Assembly: GCA_038496445.1 (NCBI GenBank)
Contig: JALMLS010000548.1
Location: 192,586-256,585, forward strand
Origin: Trichosphaerium sp. ATCC 40318
Lineage: Eukaryota; Protista; Tubulinea
DNA: 64,000 bases
Direction: 5' to 3'
Shown: positions 254 to 62,988 of the stretch, one piece after another
Layout of the letters: the number at the start of each line of letters is the position of its first letter
Numbering within the stretch: the first letter of the stretch is position 1
Translations under genes and position numbers: made by a program
The notes under the pieces: generated by a model
Database searches by the model: none
The model's input: the letters and a program-made list of their open reading frames with translations, nothing else
Told to the model about the DNA's origin: nothing

Positions 254-3129
254 TCAAACATTTAGTTCTGTGTCTAGTGTTGCATTTGCTGGTGGACTAC
301 CACCCCATTCTGAATCATCTTGTTGAACCAATGAAACTACAAAGCGCCCACGTGGGTTCTTTTTAACTAGCTCTACAACTTCTTCATCATCTTCTAGTTC
401 TTTACCTTTATATACAACAGAATCAATAGCACTTGCCTAAAAAGCTCTCGGTTATGTTTGACTTTTTTGTTTTTGTTTCAAGGACATGACGTCCCGTACC
501 TGGTTAAGGCCACATACTTCTTGTGCCTTTATGTGAGCTTTTAAATCACTGACATCAATGCCAGTGAATGATAATGATACTGCTTCAGTACCAGGAATCT
601 TAATAGAAACAACTAAAAGACAGAAAAATAAGTAACGAAACTACGGCTTTTTTTGAAACTAAAAAAAAGTGAAAACAAAAACAACTTACCAATGGCGTCA
701 CCGCCTCCATTGGAGCTATCATCTCCCGCAGATGATATACCATTGTTAAGCTGAACATGTGATTTGCTTGGATTATCAGCCTCAATAGTTGCAGCAGCTG
801 CAGGGACACTGCCATAGACAGTATTTCCGTTATTTGTATCAGCATCAATCTTTACGCTTTTCTCTGATTCTTCAAGAGCAGCGTCCTTATCAGGCGGCAT
901 GCCTTTGTAGTCAGTTACATCACCTTCATCTTCTTTTGTTTTTATTCTATCCCTTTCAGATAGTAGAATAGGTTCTTCTTCTGATACATTAGAGGCTCCA
1001 TTTGTCAACGTATCAGATAAAAGGAATGTTGTAAGTATCGATACAATAATATTTATAAAAAAGGCAAAAAAGAAGATTGTCCAAGCTCCTACAAGTCATA
1101 AAATTAGCCAATATTTCACATACACCAATTTAAAAACAAATATGTTCATTGCAGTTTGTTTGCTTTTAGGAAGAAGCAATGAAAGAAGTGATATTTATGA
1201 AAACAAAGTTGAAGTTTAATAAAAAACGAACCGACTGGAGAAGCAGACAATGGCGTCAGAAAGAACCCTACTAGTCCAATAGCAGCCAAAGAGAACAGAG
1301 ACACTGCAAGCGTTAGCCTACTTGTTTTTACAAACTGAACACGTGCTGCAGAGCGACGTGTGATGGCGTGTTTGTATGTTAAATTAGGTGATAAATAAGT
1401 TATCACTATAAGAAGCGAGAATACAAGTTTTACGATTAGAAATACAAGTAATGATATGTAAAACACGAAAGATGAACGAGGATCAGTTATACCTAATAGA
1501 TTAAGTGTAAGAAATCTAACTTATGGTGTATAAAAAGTTCAGATTTGATTCTTTGAAAATAAAAGCCACAGTACACTTGTCACACGTGTTGGGTTCTTTT
1601 TGCGATGCGCTGTGGTATTAATGGTTTGGGAATTTGGACTTACCGTCATTGATATTTAGAGCCCTTAGTACACCGAATATAAGTTCGAAGATAAATACAC
1701 CAACAATACCACCAACCCAAACACGTGAGTGGTTTGTTACTAGTGTATGAATCTTTCCAGCTATTCCTGAAGGAGTTGAAATGATTTGTTGCCTAAAATA
1801 GTGAGTATTGTGTCAACATAAGAAAGATGACTTTGTAAACTATCATCAAGCATAATTCAGAAAAACAACAACGTACAGGTAAGTGAAAACAAGCATCAAA
1901 GAAGCATTTGTGAGCGGGTTCAATAACAGGAAAATAAATTGATGATGAAAGTCAACACCATTAAAGTATGGCATTGTTAGTACATTACGAATACGTGGTC
2001 TAGGTGCAATAACAAAATACAATGCACGAACTAATATACAAAGTCAGATTTGACAAAAATACAAAAAAAAAGTAAAAAAACAGCTATCGAGTTCAAGTGA
2101 TTGATGAGTAAATAGAATGGATCTCTTCGATACAAATAAACACCACGATTTTTCTATACTCAAATCAGAGTAAAAGACTTGCAAATAGACTAATTTTTCT
2201 GACGTCACAAGGCGAAAAACATTAAACGAAAAAAGTGTCAAAAAAAAAAAAAGAAGAAATGAACGTACCAATATTAGTTATAAGTTCTAGTGTGAGTATA
2301 AAGTACCCTAAAGGCACACTACATCCAAACCGTGTAAAAAATAATAGTAGCTTATAGAAAGCAATAGCTACACCAACAGCAGCACCTAAACCAAGTATAC
2401 TCTGCCATACATAAACCGCAGGTGAATTCTCACTTTTTATCCATCCGTTTTCGCTGTCTACAAAAACTCAAATGTCAATAAACAACATCACCTCTTTTGT
2501 CGAACCTGTGTTGTCGATGTCCACACTGACATTCGCATTTTGGTTTAAAATCTGCCTCAGAGCACTTGCATCACCCTCTGAAATGCCAAGGATAGGGAAA
2601 ATAAAGTTATCGCCGTCTGGGAGGGTATATTGCGTCCGGCCAGGCGTGCCTGTAGTTATTGTACTTAGCAACATACAAAACAGTACGTGGCTTGGTTAAT
2701 ATGACGTACCATCATCCTCCCAGAATATAGCTGCGAATGGAGGACCACGAGTTTGTAAAATAGTTAACTGATTTTCAATTGGTCGTGCAACCTCTAGTAA
2801 TACGATTGTTCGGCGCAATTCAGTTGCAGTGACTGTAGCAAGATCACTTGCACTTATAAACAATAGTTCTCTTGTTCCAGCGCCTTCAAAACTTGTTGCA
2901 GCGCGTGCAATATCCAATGGAACTACAACCAAGGGCTCTAGATTAAATTGAATTTAGTTTGCAAAGGTTAGCACATAATACACCTACACCACGCACCTAT
3001 AACACCCTCGGGGTTTGTCACTGTAAGTAAAGCGTTTGATACGCAAACAAATAAAAAAAGTAATAAAGCTGCCAACCGTTAGTACTTGAAACGTACAGTA
3101 AGGTGGTACCACATACGCAGGGAAGGCAT
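254..3129 (-). CDS. Signal peptide + PA-like domain + multi-pass (about 7 TM) membrane protein with acidic linker and C-terminal ubiquitin-like domain (spliced)
   Basis: ATG at 3129 followed by a hydrophobic leader. PA-like segment 'RRTIVLLE...AAIFWEDD...FPILGISEGDASALRQIL'. Several hydrophobic helices across 1000-2450. C-terminal 'VSDLKAHIKAQE...VVYKGKELEDDE'. TGA at 254-256. Confidence 0.65.
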
Positions 3130-3441
3130 TTTATCACTTTTTACCATAATTTAGCCTTTATAAATAAATAATGCAACACCACCGACACAACGCACAGTTG
3201 TATTGGTTACGCGCGCTCGAAAATAACAGTGAACGCAGTTTTATACCTGCCTTAACCACAGTACAAAAACAAAAAATTGAAAGTTAACACAACGAGTAAA
3301 GTGATGGTAAAATCAAGCTCTTAGAGTACACTACAGATTCTCGTACAAAATTGAATAGCAAGTAGCCGAGCGTCAACACTAAATAATTCGTAACGCTCAT
3401 GTTGGGGTCTTTTTTTTATAATGCTAGAGAGCAGTTAAACT

Positions 3442-12168: not shown

Positions 12169-15100
12169 ATGAAAATGTATCAAAAACAGAAGTTGCTTCG
12201 TACTTTCTAATGGAGACCTTTTGGCGTTATTTTATAGACCCTAGATCTCTTACTGATATACAGTATTGTGCTAAAGAGGATAAAATCTACATTCTAAGCA
12301 ATTACACCAAAAATGTAGACAGCGAACGTGATGAGAAAAATAATACGCCCCTGATGACCGCGTGCGCGTAAGTAACGCATACACAGTATTAACAGCAATA
12401 TTTCTTAACGTACAAAACTTCAGAAATACTAGTTTAGCTTTTGTGACGGCTATACTCGATATGGGAGCATCAGCGTCATTGAAAAACAGCCACGGATCAA
12501 CTCCACTTCATTTGGCAGCATACAACCCGTAAGTAACTTTTATTTGAAAAACAGCTATTTACTCTTTTCATTTTTGAAAAATGTTGATTTTGACTTTGCG
12601 GCGTTTGCTACCAGTAGCTTTAAGTTTCATCTCCGTCATTCCTATATGATTGAGCTACGTACCAATTGCAAGTATTATGGTTATAAGAGCTATGAAGATA
12701 AGCCTTGTGAGGCGAACAGCGTTAAAACCGTTTTTTTTGTTCTCAATCTCAGATTTTTATTTAAATCAAAGTGCAATAACAGCATTGTCATTGTACTAAT
12801 ATGTGGATTGATAACATTTTTATTCATTTAGTGGTTCATCACAAGTACAAATTGGCAAGTTACTAATAAAAAATGGAGCACCTATGGAAGCTGTTGACAA
12901 TAATAATTTCACAGCATTACACATGGTACGTGAATAGAATGACTCCATTTTCCTTCTTTTGGGTAATTAGAAATAAAGGCAATAATACAAAGATGCACAC
13001 GCTTTGCAAAGTGGCTCATTGAATCTGGAGCTAATATTGAAGCACAGAGTACGTATATCCTTAGTTCTTGACTTTTGAAAAAATGACACATTTTCCACAA
13101 AAACTAAGAAAAGCACTGAAGTTTTGTTGTTCTGTGCGTTTTATTGTGGCTGCTTCGCACCAAAGGCTCTTTTGTTATCAAATCAATATTCCCTTAGCTT
13201 AATGGTGGAGCATCTGTCTTACACACAGAAGGTTGTGATTTCGATCCTCATAGGGAATATCTTCCTTTTTGTTATTTTCATAGCTAACACTTTACTCAAG
13301 ATAACCAAGGATACACACCACTCATTGTAGCGTGTGCTAACGGTGACACAGAATCAGCTAAACTATTAATTGAGCGAGGTTGTGATGTTACAATACGATC
13401 ACGTGGAAGCCACGAAACATCTTTAATTTTTGCAGTTCGGTAATGCTTTACAAATATGTTGCGGTCAACTCATTTAGTGTAGTTCTGGACACCTTGAAAT
13501 TGTGAAACTCCTACTTGCCAAAGATTTGTCTTTGCTCCATGTCAGAGACGCAAGAAAACTGCATTTTTTGCTTTGCTAAACTAAGTTAGTCCTCTGGATC
13601 ATTACCAATACACTTTACAGCACACCAAGCAGCAAACACTCGTAAGTGATTGCCACTGTTTCAAAACCGCTACATTTTTTTACCTAACAACGTTCTTCCA
13701 CGTAGAAATCTTGGATTTTTTGTTGTCTGTGGGTGCTGATATAAATGCTACTACAAGTGCTAATGAAACTCTACTTCATTTTGCAACTGAAAGAAATGAC
13801 GAGGCTCACATAAGTGCTCTCCTAGATCGTAAAATTAATGCCAATAATCGCTCATCTTTCGGTACAACAGGTAAGCTTTATATCGTATTTCCTTTGCTCT
13901 TTTGGCTACTCCGCCAGCTACGGCTTGGTAATAACAACTGTAAATTCCCTTAGCTTAATGGTGGAGCACCTGTCTAACACACAGGAGGTTGTGAGTTCGA
14001 TCCTCACAGGGAATATTTACAATTTTACGTATTGCAACAATTATTCTGGTAAATTTCTAAGAACATTGTTTAGCCCTTCATGAAGCTTGCATCAAGTGTC
14101 AGTATAATATTGTCAAGTTACTCGTAACAAAGGGAAATGCTGACGTCAATAGTAAAGATACAGATGGATTAACACCTCTTCATACTTTAACACATGCGTC
14201 AGTGCGTAAAAACCGCGAAAACTGTTTTGATTCATTGTGGTTTACCTTAGGCAAAGCAAAGCAGTGAAACTGTTATCAATATTGCATCATTTCTTTTAAA
14301 GTCTGGTGCTGATGTAAACTGTTTAAGCAATGACGGGGTACCTGCACTTCGCCATGCTCTTTCGAGAGCACATCGTTTTGACCTTGTCAAATATTTCTGT
14401 GAGGTACACTTTGAGCGTTTTTCTGATCCTCGCAGCCATTATAATCACGTGATTTTATATAAAATAATAATTGTTTACTTGGTTCAGGTTGGAGCAGAAG
14501 CTTGTAATGAAGATGTTTATGGGTGGACAAACCTCCATTTCCTTGTAAACAACAATAAGCCAAAAGAGACAATTGAGTTCTTTAAATCTTACATTTCCAA
14601 AACCAATCCTGATTTCCTTGAAACGTTTGATCCAAAAAAACCTCGGGTAGAACCTAAAGGTACCGCCAATCCTTTCTTTATTAGTATAGACGCTTATTAC
14701 TTACTTGACATTACAGAAATTGAAACATTCAATGGACTATCAAAAGAAGAAAGACATGAAGTGCTAGGTGGTAACGTATCAATCGAAGCAATTGCAGAAA
14801 AAATTAAGAATAGCTCGATCAAAAAGATTATTGTTCTCACTGGTACGGACAGCAGAAAGTTTTTGGAAATCTAATATGTAAATTAAAGGTGCTGGTATCA
14901 GTACGAACTCTGGAATTCCTGATTTTAGGTCTAAAGAGCAAGGACTTTACACAACAAATTATCTGGCTGAGAAACTTAAAGTTTTCAACAAAAACGCCTT
15001 CTCACTTCAATCATTTCAACAAAACCCAGCAGATTTTTATAAAATCGTAAAGACACTATTCTTACCTATTATAAACGGTGAATACAAGTACGAACTAATA

Positions 15101-54612: not shown

Positions 54613-57426
54613 ATGGTTTACATAATTAACGGCAAAGTAATGCCAGGGAAGCCTACTGAGCCTAGTATGTCACTTGTTTGCTTATAGAACTCACAATCCA
54701 TCTAGAACAGTTCAACGATAACAAAACCACATTCAGTGGCGCGATTGGGCCAAAACCAGGCAATTTGCCGGCAGTACTTGATCGTTATGCGCTTTGTGTG
54801 GCCTATGCATGTCCTTTCGCCAGTAGAGTGCTCGCTACTATGAAACTAAAAAAGCTTGACGTACGTTTGCTAAAATGCGCTCGTACGCCTATTTCCCCTT
54901 CCTCATACATTTACCTAGCATGTATTTGACGTATGGTACATGAAACCGAACAAGAACAATGACGTTGGTTGGGAGTTTGCAGAGGAGACCAACGGATTTA
55001 ATTTCTTACATCAAGTATACACCGCATCTGATAGCGCATGTACAACAAAAGTTAGCGTCCCTGTGCTTTGGGTACGAAACGGTTTTCTGGTTTTTTTTTT
55101 TTTCGTAAAGCAACGTAGCGGTTTGCGAACGCAATAGTTACTTCAGCCTCATCGTGTGACGGAAATACTGACACATGTGGAAGGATAAAAAAACTCAAAA
55201 AATAGTTAACAATGAGAGCGCTGAGATTTCTCGTATGCTTAACAACGAGTTTAACGCATTTACAGATGCTACGATAGATCTATACCCTAAAGTAAGTAGA
55301 AATTTGGGTGTTTTTATTGTAACTTTCTTTTGTACTTATACTTGGTGCCAAAGGATCTGGCTACATCCATTGACGAGCTTAACAGTGAGATAGGGAACCA
55401 CGTCAACAACGGAGGTACCATCCATAAAACACTCGTATATACTAACACTCAACCTCCTTTATAGTTTACAAAGTAGTACTGTCACCTACGCAAGACATCT
55501 ACGAGGTATGCACCAACGTCATTTTGCAGACACCTTTTGCTATTTTGAGCCTTACACTAATTTTGGCAAAAAAAAGACTCATTGTAAAGCTGTGTTCAAA
55601 TGTTTGGATGGTCTCGAAGAGCGCTTGTCCAAGCAACGATACCTGGTCAGTAACACCCATGTTACAGAATCTGATGTACGATTTTATCTATTACAATATC
55701 CTGTGAATGACAGTACCCCTTAGATTCGCCTATTTGTTTCACTAGTGAGATTTGATGCCGCATACTATCCTATTTTCAAATGTAACATAAAGAGAATCAG
55801 CGATTACCCAAATCTCTCCAACTTTGTTAGGGACATTTACCAAGTACGTCCACACTGACTTTGTTCACGTAAGTATTCACACATTTCTTAAGATTCCAGG
55901 CATATCAGACACTGTAAACATAAGAGAAATTGTAATTGCTTACACGTGCGTAGTAATTAAGCGTGCTTGCGTACTGACTAACCCTTAGATGCTCTTTCGC
56001 TTCCAAACCACGCATACCTATCATTAATGATCCAAAGTTTGATTTTCCTCACGATCGCTTCAAATTTGCCAGTGCAAGTGTGAGTGAAGCACTGAAAACG
56101 AAAGGTCAAGAAGATGACGCTAAGCAAACAGACAAAGCAAAAGGAGTGGTACAAACTTTGAATTTTGGCGTATGCACGCTTATGTAATTGTTTTAGTTTG
56201 TCCGTGGTACTAGCAAACATCGTGATGTTGTTACTGTAGATGGTTCTTCAGGGTTCAAAGCCGAAAAAGGCAAAGAAAAATGCTGACAAGCTTACTGTAG
56301 CTCACAAGGTTTTTTCGTTAGGTCGATACCACCTCTTGGTTGCAAATAACTGTCCTTGGTCCCACAGAACTATAATAGCACGAAAACTTAAAGGGCTAGA
56401 AGATGTTGTAACAATGGATATACTTTACTGGAAACGTGATGCGGAACGGTAAACAGAACTACCAAAACCAATAATTATTGATTATTCTTCTCCTTCCTAG
56501 CGGTTGGCAGTACAATCCAGAAGCTCCAGGCTGTACTAAGAATACCGTAAATGATTTTAAGTACATCACGGAATTCTATGAGAGCGTTGGTAAGTGCAAA
56601 TTGTACAATAAACATTGCACGCGTCTTTACAAGTTTGTAGGATCTAAAGAAAAATCTGTACCTGTACTTTGGGATAGAAAAACAAATACAATTGTTAACA
56701 ACGAGAGTTCAGAAATTATTCGTATCTTTAACTCTGGATTTGGAGATCTCGCTTCTTCAACATATGACTTGTATCCTTCTAACCTAGCGCCACTTGTACG
56801 GGTTAAGATTGTTTATGCAGTTCTTGAACTAACACCATTCATAGATTGACTACCACAACGCATGGATTTATCCAGGTATGGAATTACTTTTTTTCGCGCT
56901 TGAAAACAATTTCACTAAGACGGCTAACGTTCTTCCTCTAGAAATCAACAACGGCGCTTACAAGGCGGGTTTTGCAAGTGCTCAAGACGCATACGAAAAA
57001 GCATACAACATATTCTTTAGGGCACTTGACAAGCTCGAGTTAGTATTCGCCACGAACAAATACGTTTGTGGTGACAAAGTTACAGAAGCAGACGTCCGCT
57101 TGTTACCAACAATTTTCCGCTTTGACCACGTGTACGTACCCTTCATTCTTCCTTATACGTCACATAACGTTTACGATTTCGATTAGATACTACACACGCT
57201 TTAATCTCAACAAAGCTATGATTCGTGAGGGATATCTTCATACTTTCAGGTGGTTGAAAGAAATGTATGCGCTAAGTTTTGTTTTTTCACTGTTAATTAT
57301 TTACGTGTTTGTAGGCTCGCTTTGCCTGGAGTTTTGGACGCATCCAATTTGGAACATTGCAAGAATGGTTACTTTGGGCGGACAGGAAATAACTTGATAC
57401 CAGTTGGTCCCGATTTTGGCTTCTAG
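54613..57426 (+). CDS. Glutathionyl-hydroquinone reductase (GST Xi/ECM4/YqjG family), two domains fused in tandem
   Basis: Domain 1: ACPFASR, SVPVLWDKK...VNNESAEI, LVRFDAAY. Domain 2: CPWSHR, SVPVLWDRK...VNNESSEI, IFRFDHVY. The spliced frame runs continuously across 55990-56270. Confidence 0.85.
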
Positions 57427-58669
57427 AAAGCCATCCATGCGACGTACAACGAAAGCGCCAATAAATAAAACAGTGTTTCTGTTGTGACAGTTTTTTTTTT
57501 GGGAATCGTCAACGCAAATTCGCGATGGACAGGAAAGGCGAAATAGAGGGATATTCAGGCTAAAAAGGGTTCGTAGAGAACAACGAGACCATAAATAAAG
57601 CGATTTTGATACCAAAAGTTTTTTTTGTTTGAGAAATCCACAAAAAAAAAAACGTACCGGGATAAAATAGAGAAAGCAGCGATTTGAGGTGATTGAGGAT
57701 ACTTTGAGCACTTTTTGGACCGTTTGAGTGACAGTAAAAAGCGACACAAAGCGCGAGGCGTACAAACCAACTAACGTTGTAATTGTTTCTGAAAAAAAAT
57801 AGAAAAATCATCCATAGCGCCTGTATAAGTATCAAAGGTAGTTGTAGAGCGCTTACAGGGCGAAGAAAACTCGATATTTTCGGGAAAGGGAGTCAGTCTT
57901 ACAACCGTGTAGCCTAAAGCGGCGCAAATAGAGAAGCTGGCTAAGGGTTAGCACCACAGAGCTAGTTCCAGCAACAGGCGACACAATCGCCCTTGCAAGA
58001 GGAGCTACAAAAAAAAAAGGAGGGGTAATCAGACGCGCCATTTTTTTCTTTGAACCCAATAGCGGGTAAGATACAGAAAAGATGGTAAAAGCGCAACCTC
58101 CAAGCAAAGATTGCTGGACCTTAAAAGCCCACAGGGAGTGCACGGTGGTATGGGACCCCGCCCATCGTGCAGCACATTTGTAGCCACAACACGGGCTGAG
58201 GGACCTTAACGAGCCATTAATCTTCTACCACATAAGCCCCTATGAAAAATGCTTTAAAAAACATAGCATAGGCAGTGGTAATCGACTTTTGGCTCTCCAT
58301 CAAGCAACGCTTGTCTACACAAGACAGGTGTCTCGATGGCTGGAAAGTGTGAGTGAACGTGTCACTCTGTAACTACAGAGCACTAAAACGACCTCCACAC
58401 ACGCAAGCATATTCCACAAGAGGGTAGCCTGTATTCTTCTATCGCAGAAAGAACCCAAATAATGTATTTTAATTGGGTTTTGCGCGTTTTAGAGCACATG
58501 GCTGTAAGTCCTCTTGTTTTTATGCACCCACCTTTTGTATTTGGAATGGAAGCAGAAACCAGCAATGCGCATTCCTACATAACCACATAACCACACAAGT
58601 ACGGCTACTCTAGCTTTTATTATGTGATAGAAAAGGACGAGTTACGGCTCGCCTCTTAGTATATCCATC

Positions 58670-60001
58670 GATGACGATGCCAGTTGGTGAAATGTGTTGC
58701 AATGTAGTTTACCTCAACTTGCTTTTTTTTCTATTACATCCATTCCATAAAGACAACAACCGTTGTACCTGTGCTCTTCTAGCATTATAACACTCACTTG
58801 AAGTGTAGAAATGCTAATCGAGTACTGATGTAATGGCAAACCTTTTGTTCTTCTAGCATTAGAACATCTCACGTTATTGTTGAGATGTAGAAATGCTAAT
58901 CGAGTAATTGTTGTTGCCTACAACACCAAGAGTGACTTGAACCGAATGCATCTGTGTGATGAACAGGTTCTGAAGTCAAACAAGACTTGGATTCCTCTTC
59001 TTTCATGAGTAATGCATTACAGCAATGTAGTGTGGCACATGTTAATCGAGGTATCTCAGACATGGTTATGCAATCTCAAGTAGTTGAGCATCAACCTATC
59101 TCTAAAGTGCTTGTGAGCAAATCAAGTTGCTCAACAATATCAGTTGAAGTTCCATAGTGAACAACAATTGTAGTTTGTACAACTAAGTTGACGCCCTAAG
59201 TGGGCAACAACAACAACAACAAAAAACCCGCATTGGCTCTTTTGTTTCTCTTCTAACGTTATAACACATTCTCCCAAAAGGGAAAGGTGTAGAAACGCTA
59301 ATCGAGTACTGAGCTTATGTAAAACACCATAATTACCATATGATGATGTGCAAGTCACATTTTGTTGGTAGTACAAAAAGATGTGCATTTGAAGCCCTCA
59401 GTGGGCAACAAAACCCATCTAAAAAATGTATGACGTTGGTTCTCTTCTGACATTATAACACCCATGTGGTGTAGAAATGCCAATCGAGTTCTAGATCATG
59501 CAAATGAGCTGACTTGACTTCTCTTCTAACATTATAACACTTCCTCTTTTAAGAAAAAAGGAGGAGGTGTAGAAATGCTAATCGAGAGGTATTAGTTCAT
59601 GCAAGACTACAGTTCAAAGTGTATGCAAAGTCATATGCTTTGGGCGGATGAAAGGAACCAAAGTGTTCCAACTAGTCCGTAAAGACTGTAAGATAAACAT
59701 ATCTTATAAAAAAACCTAATGGAAAGAAAAGTATCAAGTACTTGGGTTAAATAATAGATGTGAGCCTGAAGCAGAAATGTGAAAGGCAAATTGATGGAAA
59801 GGCACACAAGCCAAGTACATCAATGAAAGCAAGTGTAGCTAATTGCTACAACTTGAAGGCTTAACAAGGAAAGGCACAGTCCAAGTACTTGAATAGTAAA
59901 GAAAAACAAAAAAAAAGAGTGTATTAAAAATGATGCAGTTGCAAGCTATTACCGACGATGCCTCAAGGGCTACTCAGTAAAAAAAATAGGCATGACTCAT
60001 C
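58670..60001 (+). ncRNA. Candidate large ornate structured RNA (ROOL-like), about 1.33 kb
   Basis: Nested end-to-end helices: GATGA/ATGCC 58670-58681 with GGCAT/TCATC 59989-60001; GTTGGTGA 58683-58690 with TTACCGAC 59949-59956; TTGCAATGTA 58697-58706 with TGCAGTTGCAA 59934-59944. Internal GAA/AGUA loops, a GNRA hairpin and repeated hairpin modules. ROOL resemblance is from recall only. Confidence 0.6.
58774..59586 (+). repeat. Six dispersed copies of a hairpin module CTCTTCTAGCATTATAACAC-(variable stem-loop)-GTGTAGAAATGCTAATCGAG
   Basis: Copies at 58774-58822, 58848-58904, 58995-59050 (degenerate), 59248-59306, 59442-59488 and 59521-59586. Confidence 0.9.
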
Positions 60002-60328
60002 AAGAAAAGTAGTCCTTTAAAAAGACACAACCCTATGCTGTTGTGGCAATGTGCTCTATGAGCATCTCTTGCCATAAAAACCATAACCAAGACATACCAG
60101 CTTCTTCTCCAACAAGAAAGGCTGGTACTGTCCGGCACCAGGTATTTGTGATGTTCATCAAAAAGACCTTCATCTTACATCCTCCTTGAAAGAGAATAGG
60201 AATAAAGATCGAATGGTTTCTTATGAAGTTCATTCTTCAAAAAACCACCTAAAAACCTCAACCTCCTTTGGTCTGATGAGAAATTATTTTAAATGCAGCT
60301 GTCTGCTTTAAAACTCTGATGCAAAAGG

Positions 60329-62988
60329 TACCTGGTTGAGCCTGCCAGGAGTGATAAGCTTTCTCGAAGGATTAAGCCATGCAAGCTCAGCAAAGAGGTA
60401 TCCTCGGAGCCGCAAACGGCTCCTAAAACGGTCGTAACCCACCCGACAAGACTAATAATGGTCACGTCATTTTGCACACAGGAACTTGTTTTCCTAAACG
60501 CACTATAACCAAAACTCGTGGCCTCCCCCGCGGATAACCGGGATTAAAGGAAACCTGCGGCTAATACGTAATGCGCCTAGCGCTGCCGATGGGCCCCTCT
60601 GCTGCAAGGACCCATCGGTCGCATCCAACGCTCAGGAGCGGACGATCACCCGATCCCATCTTGGTTCGCCAAGGGAAGCAGCCTCCCCTTAGGAAGCGGC
60701 GTCCGTACTCCGTCGGGAAGAGCGGCGTTGGGGCATGCGATGGAGTTACGAGGAGTTCTCTCTGACTAGACATGTTTCTAAAAAATAATGTAAAGTTACT
60801 TAAGGTGAAACTAGGTGAAAGAAAAATGAACAACTTTGTTCAATCTCGATCCTTCGCCCAAATGTGCTTTTTCATAAAAAAAGATCATATCGATATAAAG
60901 TTGAGAGTTCTCCCCCTCCACGAGTCGGAAGGGCGGCCGACCTATCAGCCAGGCGGTAGGGTAACGGCCTACCGCGGCAGTGACGGGTAACGGGGAACTA
61001 GGGTTCGGTTCCCGGAGAAGGGGCATTAGATACGGCCCCTGTACTTACGGGTAACAGCAGGCGCGTAACTTGGCCATTGATTGCAAATCGAGCCAGCGAC
61101 TGAGTGTAACGAGGCCGGCATTTAAACCGGTCGTCGCAATGAGGGGCAACTGAATGTCGCCCTGAGAAACTATTGGAGGACAAGTTGGGTGCCAGCACCC
61201 GCGGTAACACCCACTCCGAAAGCTTATACTTTTGCTGTTGCTGTTAAAGCGCTCGCAGTCCAAACAACGACACAGCTGAGAGGGACAAGGTTTTATATAG
61301 GAGTTTACTCCTTGACAAAACCCCCCGACTCTTTTTCATCGCCCGACCAGGCATAAATGGCTTCGCTCAAACGCAAGGTCAGTTTAGGCTTCGGCCGCTA
61401 TGCCACCCACCAGCATCCTGGAATTGGGCTTTAAAAAAACAAAAAAACAACTTTACCAAGTGCGACGCTCAAGTCTCATTTTTAACCAAGTATAAACAAT
61501 ATCCTGATATGCAAGTCTGAGTGAAAACTTATGTTCTTCATTAAGGGAATAAAAACATTGTGAATTACAAAAGTACTTTGAGAAAAAACCTTGAGTTAGT
61601 CTTCACACTAATAAAGAACACACGATTACTAGGTGCGTACGGGGTAGAGAGTGTGGTATCAGCGAGGAGTGAAATCTTTTGACCTGATCCAAACTACCCG
61701 AAGCGAAGGCGCTCTGCAAGGGCGTGGCCGGTGATCTAGAACGATGGTGGAGGGAGCGAAGCGGATTAGAGACCCGTGTAGTCTCCACAGTAAACGATGC
61801 CGACTGAATGGGCGCCGGGCAAACCAAGGCTCGGGGCCCGTTCCCACGGGAAACCGAAGTAATCGGGCCCAGGGGGGAAGTATGGTCGCAAGGCTGAAAC
61901 TTAAAGGCATTGACGGAGCAACACCACCAGGCTCTGGAGGCTGCGGCTCAATTTGACTCAACGCGCGACAACTTACCGGGATCGGACGCTCTAAGGGGAC
62001 GAACAGACTGAAGGGTCTTTTCCGAGTTAGCTAACGGTGGTGCATGGTCGTTTTAGGCTCGTGGACTTATCTGTCAGGTTTATTCCGATAACGGGCGAGA
62101 TCGCTACTGTCACATTGATTCCCCCGCCTCGTGCGGGACCCCTGTGCAGGACTGACGGCGAAAAGTCGTAAGAAGCGGCGGCTATAACAGATCCGGATGC
62201 CCCCAGATATTCCGGGCCGCACGCGGCCTACACTGCTTAGTTCAACGGGTTCCTGGGCCGAACAGGCATCCGGGCAAGCCCTGAAACCGCCAGAACACTT
62301 CTTCACGACAGCGAGTTAAACCTCAGATTTTATTATCTAAATACGACTACACTTAAACGCACCTTCGGAAACTACCACCTTCATAACAAAAGTCTGTCCT
62401 GAACCTAATATAAAGAGTTAACCCCCTCGTCGAGGCTTTTTAGGAAGTTAAATTCCTTTAATGTTAAGATGAGAAGCGCTGTTAGATGAAAACTTACATC
62501 TTTGGACTCGTTTCCTTAGTGTAAACATTGAAAGAGCTGTGGATCGTTTCAAATTAACAAATAAGGTTTCTTCTTCACTTAAATGCTTTGACCTGGAAGA
62601 TTATATATCTTTACCAAGGCAAACTTTATTATGAAGTAAGTTTCTGCAATGTTCATAAAAAAAATACATGAAAGCGCACCGTGTGGTCGATTTGGATGTT
62701 AAGTGTGCTCAATGCTGCTTCTCCGAAAAGACACATGCGTGCTTAGGGACTGGTTGCTGTAACTGTAGCCACGAACGCGGAATGCTCGTACAGGTGTGTC
62801 ATCAACGCACCTGGAATCTGTCCCTGTTGCTTGTACACACCGCCCGTCGCATCGACCGATGTGGGTGCGAGTGGACCAGGGGGGACGACCGGCTTGCCGG
62901 TTATCGAACCTGCTCGAACTTGCGCTCATATAAAGGATGATGATGTCGTAACAAGGTTTCAGTAGGTGAACCTGCTGAAGGATCAATA
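60329..62988 (+). rRNA. 18S (SSU) rRNA, highly divergent, about 2.66 kb with large AT-rich insertions
   Basis: 5' TACCTGGTTGAGCCTGCCAG; GATTAAGCCATGCA; GTGCCAGCACCCGCGGTAA; GAAACTTAAAGGCATTGACGG; TTGTACACACCGCCCGTC; GTCGTAACAAGGTTTCAGTAGGTGAACCTGCTGAAGGATCA. Confidence 0.97.

Follow-up and report, generated by a model that had tools for sequence, protein, structure and literature searches.

A covarying hairpin family forms spacer repeats upstream of the rRNA genes of Trichosphaerium

Upstream of the rRNA genes of Trichosphaerium sp. ATCC 40318 lies a cassette of spacer DNA whose repeat units are imperfect hairpins of 80-100 nt, and the modules described here are the conserved cores of these hairpins. 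The array consists of rDNA spacer repeats with an unusually clear structural constraint. All positions refer to the window, i.e. the whole 64-kb stretch of DNA that was analysed, and its features are listed in Table 1.

The original prediction had placed the modules on a large RNA. This frame is unsound, because the stretch is rDNA upstream spacer, located just 5' of the 18S gene and repeated at every rDNA unit. Further, the region is far rarer than the 5' ETS core in RNA-derived assemblies. In Rfam, both at the gathering score and at E values up to 5, nothing but rRNA and a chance match to mir-302 is found; giant ornate RNAs (ROOL, GOLLD) have no match up to E 5 and were rejected as candidates.

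Table 1. Features of the cassette and of the adjacent rRNA gene in the window.
Feature	Position	Strand	Evidence and remarks
Island hairpin, distant family member	58220-58286	+	CM 18.4 bits
Canonical module 1	58774-58822	+	CM 71.4 bits; RNA fold -12.4 kcal/mol, z -3.2
Module 1 with paired flanks	about 58760-58836	+	extended fold -25.3, z -4.1
Canonical module 2	58848-58904	+	CM 62.6 bits; fold z -4.0
Module 2, extended hairpin	about 58835-58918	+	extended fold -25.7, z -3.8
Divergent family member	58995-59050	+	CM 22.6 bits, E 1e-4 to 3e-3; fold -20.2, z -3.6
Hairpin B (stem GCCC/GGGC)	59189-59208	+	direct repeat; fold z -3.3 and -2.2 (two copies)
Canonical module 3	59248-59306	+	CM 64.1 bits
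Hairpin B, second copy	59390-59409	+	direct repeat; alternates with modules
Canonical module 4	59442-59488	+	CM 62.6 bits
Canonical module 5, promoter-nearest	59521-59586	+	CM 67.5 bits
Module 5, extended hairpin	59505-59599	+	extended fold -35.8, z -6.0
Motif C, three copies (GGAAAGGCAC..AAGTAC type)	59718-59888	+	between array and ETS core; cassette maps
U3 hinge complement	60035-60048	+	14 bp: 13 Watson-Crick and 1 G.U
Eukaryotic SSU rRNA gene	60329-62988	+	Rfam RF01960, 990 bits; followed by 5.8S/LSU

The hairpin family

The core of a module is an imperfect palindrome of 47-66 nt, with a 5' arm CUC-UUC-UAGCAUU-AUA-ACAC and a 3' arm GUGU-AGA-AAUGCUA-AUC-GAG of 20 nt each. These pair into a core helix of 14 bp that is broken by two 3x3 internal loops. 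By pattern match five canonical copies are present in the window, all on the plus strand between 58774 and 59586. As the original prediction had proposed, a covariance model (CM) was built, here on 43 distinct copies from this genome. The canonical copies score 62-71 bits against it (E about 1e-14 to 1e-16), and a CM scan of the 64-kb window finds no family members beyond these five and two divergent ones. In module 2 the outer stem begins with UUC, which gives a U.G pair.

Six covarying copies had been claimed for this region. Five of them match the described pattern exactly, while the sixth, at 58995-59050, is divergent: of the pattern it retains the outer stem and the UUC/AUC loop alone (CUC-UUC...AUC-GAG), and its inner helix is different. 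Compared with its C6 paralog this copy is identical at 55 of 55 aligned bases, its apical part included. It seems to be constrained along its whole length, since a comparison of these loci, C84 and C6, shows differences of about 24% in the canonical tips. The second divergent member, the island hairpin, reads UC-UUC-UACCAC...GUGGUA-AUC-GA. It is about 90% conserved across every cassette, also in its loop, and has BLAST identities of 88-93% to rDNA and orphan cassettes.

In the 70-Mb genome a degenerate pattern for the full module gives at least 132 matches, against none for a reversed control, and the 3' arm by itself gives 155 against 6. Copies on C125, C166, C177, C257 and other contigs were identified by pattern match only. 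The search of public data that had also been proposed was carried out on metagenome contigs, and no relatives were found there: an exact 18-mer scan gave ten single matches, none of which is a module by the CM, and at 15.7 bits or less these are chance matches.

Covariation and structural constraint

Among the 43 distinct copies, 9 of the 17 pairs show changes on both sides. In column shuffles the corresponding number is 4.1±1.1, and none of 500 shuffles reaches the observed value; when the pairing is slid, only 1-3 pairs change on both sides. The fraction of paired cells is 88.9%, compared with 34-42% in the slid controls.

When orthology is taken into account, at least eight separate compensatory events on seven pairs can be distinguished. 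The change at pair 8-62 is confined to the fourth module of the C84, C12, C6 and C75 group and that at pair 11-59 to the third, while pair 10-60 changes in the last module of C93, C234 and C248 and pair 19-51 in a first-module type found in many cassettes. Orthologous modules of C84, C12, C6 and C75 thus retain their own compensated pairs, indicating that the modules are not simply homogenised.

Compensatory changes had been pointed out in the copies at 59248 and 59442, and both are real. In module 3 a G-C replaces the A-U at pair 11-59, a variant that recurs in the orthologous module of C12, C6 and C75, and in module 4 the same replacement is seen at pair 8-62 and is retained in the orthologues. 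Both copies also have an uncompensated A.C mismatch at pair 9-61. This mismatch is shared by the copy at 59521, and pair 9-61 is mismatched in 19 of the 43 copies.

The internal loops were described as nearly invariant, and so they are: in 43 of 43 copies they are unchanged, with one exception, as nine copies have G as the central base of AUA. Their oppositions, U.C/U.U/C.A and A.A/U.G/A.A, are non-complementary, and both loops are symmetric 3x3 loops. A kink-turn protein site was therefore rejected, as neither loop shows the asymmetric 3-nt bulge and adjoining tandem sheared G.A pairs of that motif.

Outside the core, sequence and pairing behave differently. The 39 distinct tips, 6-29 nt long, lengthen the helix by about 3 bp and form more stable folds than shuffled versions of themselves (mean z -2.1, p about 4e-8), in agreement with the claim that the apical stems vary and still pair. 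On the other side of the core the 16-nt flanks pair with each other over about 9 bp (mean z -1.6, p about 1e-11), and these flank helices differ in sequence from copy to copy. With tips and flanks both paired, the true hairpin is about 80-100 nt long, and its conserved, loop-bearing middle lies between two helices in which the sequence is free but the pairing is kept.

A comparison of the orthologous cassettes of C84 and C6 points in the same direction: the arms are identical at 198 of 200 positions, while the identity is 76.5% in the tips and 81.5% in the spacer between modules. Taken together, the seven or more compensated pairs, the invariant non-complementary loops, the 99% identity of the arms against 76-81% in tips and spacer, and the variable spacing of the arms support selection on a folded single strand and not plain tandem repetition. 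The same distinction had been drawn from the six copies in the window, and covariation, loops and arm identity all agree with it.

The array belongs to the rDNA spacer

The array occupies positions 743-1555 nt 5' of the 18S gene and shares its strand. The assembly contains 23 SSU 5' ends, two of which are not checkable; in 21 of the 21 checkable ones the array is found about 700-1500 nt upstream, on the same strand, and it ends about 700-750 nt 5' of the gene. The rDNA units are single and located at contig ends, behind unique sequence. The SSU gene of the window is 2660 nt long compared with 1831 positions in the model, so it contains large insertions.

A cassette holds 5-7 modules, which alternate with hairpin B to form a unit of about 195 nt. 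The order within cassettes is fixed: the island hairpin is followed by the modules and hairpin B, then by two or three copies of motif C, and finally by the gene. Motif C, GGAAAG(G/A)CA..AAGTAC, is found in every cassette, here as three tandem copies with a spacing of roughly 70 nt, and is a candidate for a duplicated Pol I promoter or initiator. The contig depth in RNA runs climbs stepwise over motif C, a rise that is confounded by the copy number of paralogs.

The identity between rDNA paralogs is about 70-75% over the array and 94-96% from the last module on; the block of high identity begins at 59519-59567, that is, in module 5. Further upstream, two islands (58584-58697 and 57865-57935) are conserved at 85-90% among cassettes that are otherwise 70% identical. 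The island at 58584-58697 was compared in the window with the candidate promoter region as a possible spacer promoter upstream of the array, and this was rejected at a score of 20 against 17.4±2.4 for shuffles. An open reading frame upstream of the array, at 57301-57765 on the minus strand, has no match to a Pfam family.

About 19 cassettes are orphans, with island, modules and motif C but without an rRNA gene or a U3 site. Eight of them are on C14, within 170 kb and in both orientations (an example is the region C14:367000-376999), and the others are on C93, C234, C248, C55 and elsewhere. Orphan cassettes are followed by other non-coding repeats.

Two further observations were made. Just past the 3' end of the LSU gene there is an AT-rich cluster of short GGCAATGCC-type palindromes (L036:360-560, on C34), possibly the terminator region. 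Elsewhere in the window two tRNA-Val genes, at 13187-13261 and 13944-14015 and with anticodons TAC and AAC, are located 700 nt apart.

The 5' ETS and the RNA data

The genome encodes a U3 snoRNA (C29:148689-148918, minus strand, 75 bits), and the spacer contains a complement to its hinge, located about 450 nt past the last module and 281-294 nt before the 18S 5' end. The predicted duplex has -33.7 kcal/mol, compared with -26.9 for the best control, and every rDNA cassette has the site, which the orphan cassettes lack. It is likely, judging from this complementarity, that the site is where U3 docks and anchors the 5' ETS, which would place the ETS core downstream of all modules.

The RNA data are assembled contigs of public runs and carry no strand information. 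The contig depth on the modules is about 3 in a bona fide RNA-seq run and about 50 in a probable one, while at 59957-60190 the same two runs reach about 155 and 2000-3400, and the SSU gene is far higher. A DNA-like run (X21) rises as well, about 9-fold, into 59957-60190, because paralogs converge there. Given this rise, the safe excess of the ETS core over the modules is only at least 5-fold, and at most about 50-fold. For the same reason the depth step at about 59720-59960 was rejected as a transcription start, as X21 also rises there.

The bona fide RNA-seq run does contain read-sized contigs on the modules, at low depth and with DNA carry-over as a possible source, and the spacer depth of run X1 follows that of a DNA-like run. 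Compared with the neighbouring spacer, the modules are not enriched in contig depth in the RNA runs. Contigs of X1 have sequencing adaptors exactly at 60142, inside the ETS, and at 60341, near the mature 18S 5' end, which suggests abundant discrete RNA ends at these two positions.

RNA or DNA, and strand

Folded as RNA, five of five copies have the canonical fold as their predicted minimum-free-energy structure, both when a copy is folded by itself and in a 1.4-kb context. As ssDNA the copies reach no more than -8 to -12 kcal/mol, and two of them, copies 3 and 4, adopt wrong folds. The weakness of the ssDNA folds favours RNA, and we infer that the folded molecule is RNA. Further, the spacing between the arms ranges from 6 to 29 nt, which is incompatible with a dimer site on duplex DNA, and six conserved mismatches in each 20-nt arm make the extrusion of a cruciform unlikely.

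The strand was sought in the wobble pairs, and this was given up as a tie. In the core the fold of the minus strand, opposite to the rRNA, is lower in 38 of 43 copies, while the basal helices contain more G.U pairs on the rRNA-sense strand (55 against 30) and so point to plus. For whole hairpins the strands differ by 1.3 kcal/mol (p = 0.06).

Comparison with known families and systems

Several known types of element were considered and rejected. Among miRNA models the best match, mir-302, scores 22 bits (E 0.5), where the gathering score is 55. A MITE or foldback transposon does not agree with flanks that have no target-site duplications, or with copies that are all inside the cassette and in one orientation. 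The arms were also considered as rRNA guides, but no stretch of at least 10 nt in them is complementary to SSU, ITS or LSU.

Like rDNA upstream spacer repeats, the array lies upstream of a Pol I unit, has a fixed orientation and is built from a repeated unit. Classical spacer enhancer repeats, such as the 60/81-bp repeats of Xenopus, the 140-bp repeats of mouse and the 240-bp repeats of Drosophila, are duplex-DNA sites or promoter duplicates. They are short, differ in sequence from species to species, and occur in every unit between the spacer promoter and the gene promoter. The modules resemble them in their place at every unit, but differ in that they covary as hairpins, which to our knowledge classical enhancer repeats do not. 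The nucleolin recognition element is a small hairpin repeated many times in the vertebrate ETS, a multivalent protein site with a conserved loop sequence. In the modules, in contrast, the terminal loops are free and it is the internal loops and stems that are conserved; further, they are located upstream of the mapped ETS core.

In architecture the closest system is the upstream promoter region (UPR) of myxomycetes, likewise a repeat array with inverted repeats before a Pol I unit. In the rDNA of Didymium iridis and Physarum polycephalum the UPR is built from direct repeats in which inverted repeats are nested, with about five such units directly upstream of the Pol I start and a presumed regulatory role; the repeats are 260 bp long and contain a 140-bp near-perfect palindrome that is foldable on either strand (PMC13182076). 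The core described here is different, with 47-66 nt, conserved internal loops, free tips and compensatory changes, and the rDNA is chromosomal and dispersed, unlike the myxomycete rDNA minichromosome.

In mechanism the closest counterpart, by analogy with a candidate spacer transcript here, would be the mammalian spacer RNA or pRNA, a low-abundance rRNA-sense spacer transcript in which a stem-loop recruits TIP5/NoRC (review PMC9575697). The pRNA has one hairpin and overlaps the promoter, while here there are 5-7 hairpins, and at least 130 nt separate the end of the last one from the first candidate promoter motif. A pRNA-like overlap with the gene promoter was accordingly rejected: the last module ends at 59586 and the candidate promoter motifs start at about 59718.

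Discussion

The best reading of the array, which we hold tentatively and with a little less than even confidence, is that the modules are RNA hairpins to which a protein docks, carried by a rare transcript of the rDNA spacer or leader. The fold would be made in RNA, in low-abundance spacer or upstream-leader transcripts of rRNA sense, and the invariant loops would offer one and the same protein several docking sites. The array might then gather the docked factor beside the Pol I promoter, where it could either regulate the promoter or stop or process upstream transcription before it reaches the promoter. A repeated docking site remains the most economical reading, with a putative protein as partner. 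The sequences establish the family itself, its covariation and constraint, and its constant place and orientation with respect to the rRNA genes; the RNA nature of the hairpins, their strand, the protein that docks and the effect on Pol I are presumed.

An alternative is that the repeats control the locus as DNA, for instance as an enhancer or upstream promoter or as a replication origin or barrier, read by a protein on the duplex, as a cruciform or as transient ssDNA and without any RNA. This we consider rather unlikely. The place of the array, upstream of the candidate promoter motifs and the ETS core, is indeed that of classical rDNA spacer repeats; the last module is within the block homogenised with the gene, the two strands fold about equally when the flanks are included, and the UPR of Didymium and Physarum is known as a DNA feature (PMC13182076). 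However, 6 of the 20 arm positions are conserved mismatches, by which cruciform extrusion becomes unfavourable according to established biophysics, and as ssDNA the modules fold weakly and in part non-canonically. In addition, the variable arm spacing excludes a simple duplex dimer site, and two independent duplex motifs would not be expected to show compensatory changes.

The hairpins could also be precursors of small RNAs, cut by RNase III to roughly 20-nt RNAs, or belong to an antisense spacer RNA. With the flanks included, the stem is about 30-35 positions long (about three helical turns) and has conserved arms and variable loops, like clustered miRNA families. The genome encodes a Piwi-domain protein (Argonaute) and several RNase III domains, some of them paired, and in 38 of 43 copies the antisense strand gives the better core fold. 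We nevertheless regard this as improbable, since a 14-bp core with two 3x3 loops is poorly suited to cleavage by Dicer, the modules do not exceed the neighbouring spacer in RNA-run contig depth, and the best miRNA model match, at 22 bits, is far below its gathering score of 55 (E 0.5). Finally, the repeats may be functionless palindromes that keep their pairing by template switching in quasi-palindromes and are spread by cassette duplication. rDNA spacers are generally repeat-rich, the family is limited to one genome as far as searched, and the modules move only within the duplicated cassette, the approximately 19 orphans included. Template switching could imitate compensation, but at the same time it would remove the invariant internal loops, and it fits poorly with arms that are 99% conserved next to spacer at 81% and with module-specific variants that persist among paralogs; we hold this explanation to be very improbable.

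Docking hairpins in a spacer transcript could also be part of a larger picture, in which the cassette is a self-contained Pol I control module with the array acting as RNA, the orphans are Pol I-type promoters for non-ribosomal transcripts, and the whole is an independent protist counterpart of pRNA. Such a picture is distinctly unlikely at present.

The repeats of rDNA spacers are usually seen as duplex-DNA enhancers or as junk, and the core described here bears the signature of selection on a folded strand. If the modules are DNA elements only, they are a well-characterised but ordinary feature of the rDNA of one protist. If the fold is made in RNA, they would be an unusually clean multi-copy natural system for the control of rRNA genes by spacer transcripts outside animals, offering 132 natural sequence variants. 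The orphan cassettes may then provide a test of whether such a control module is used away from the rRNA genes.
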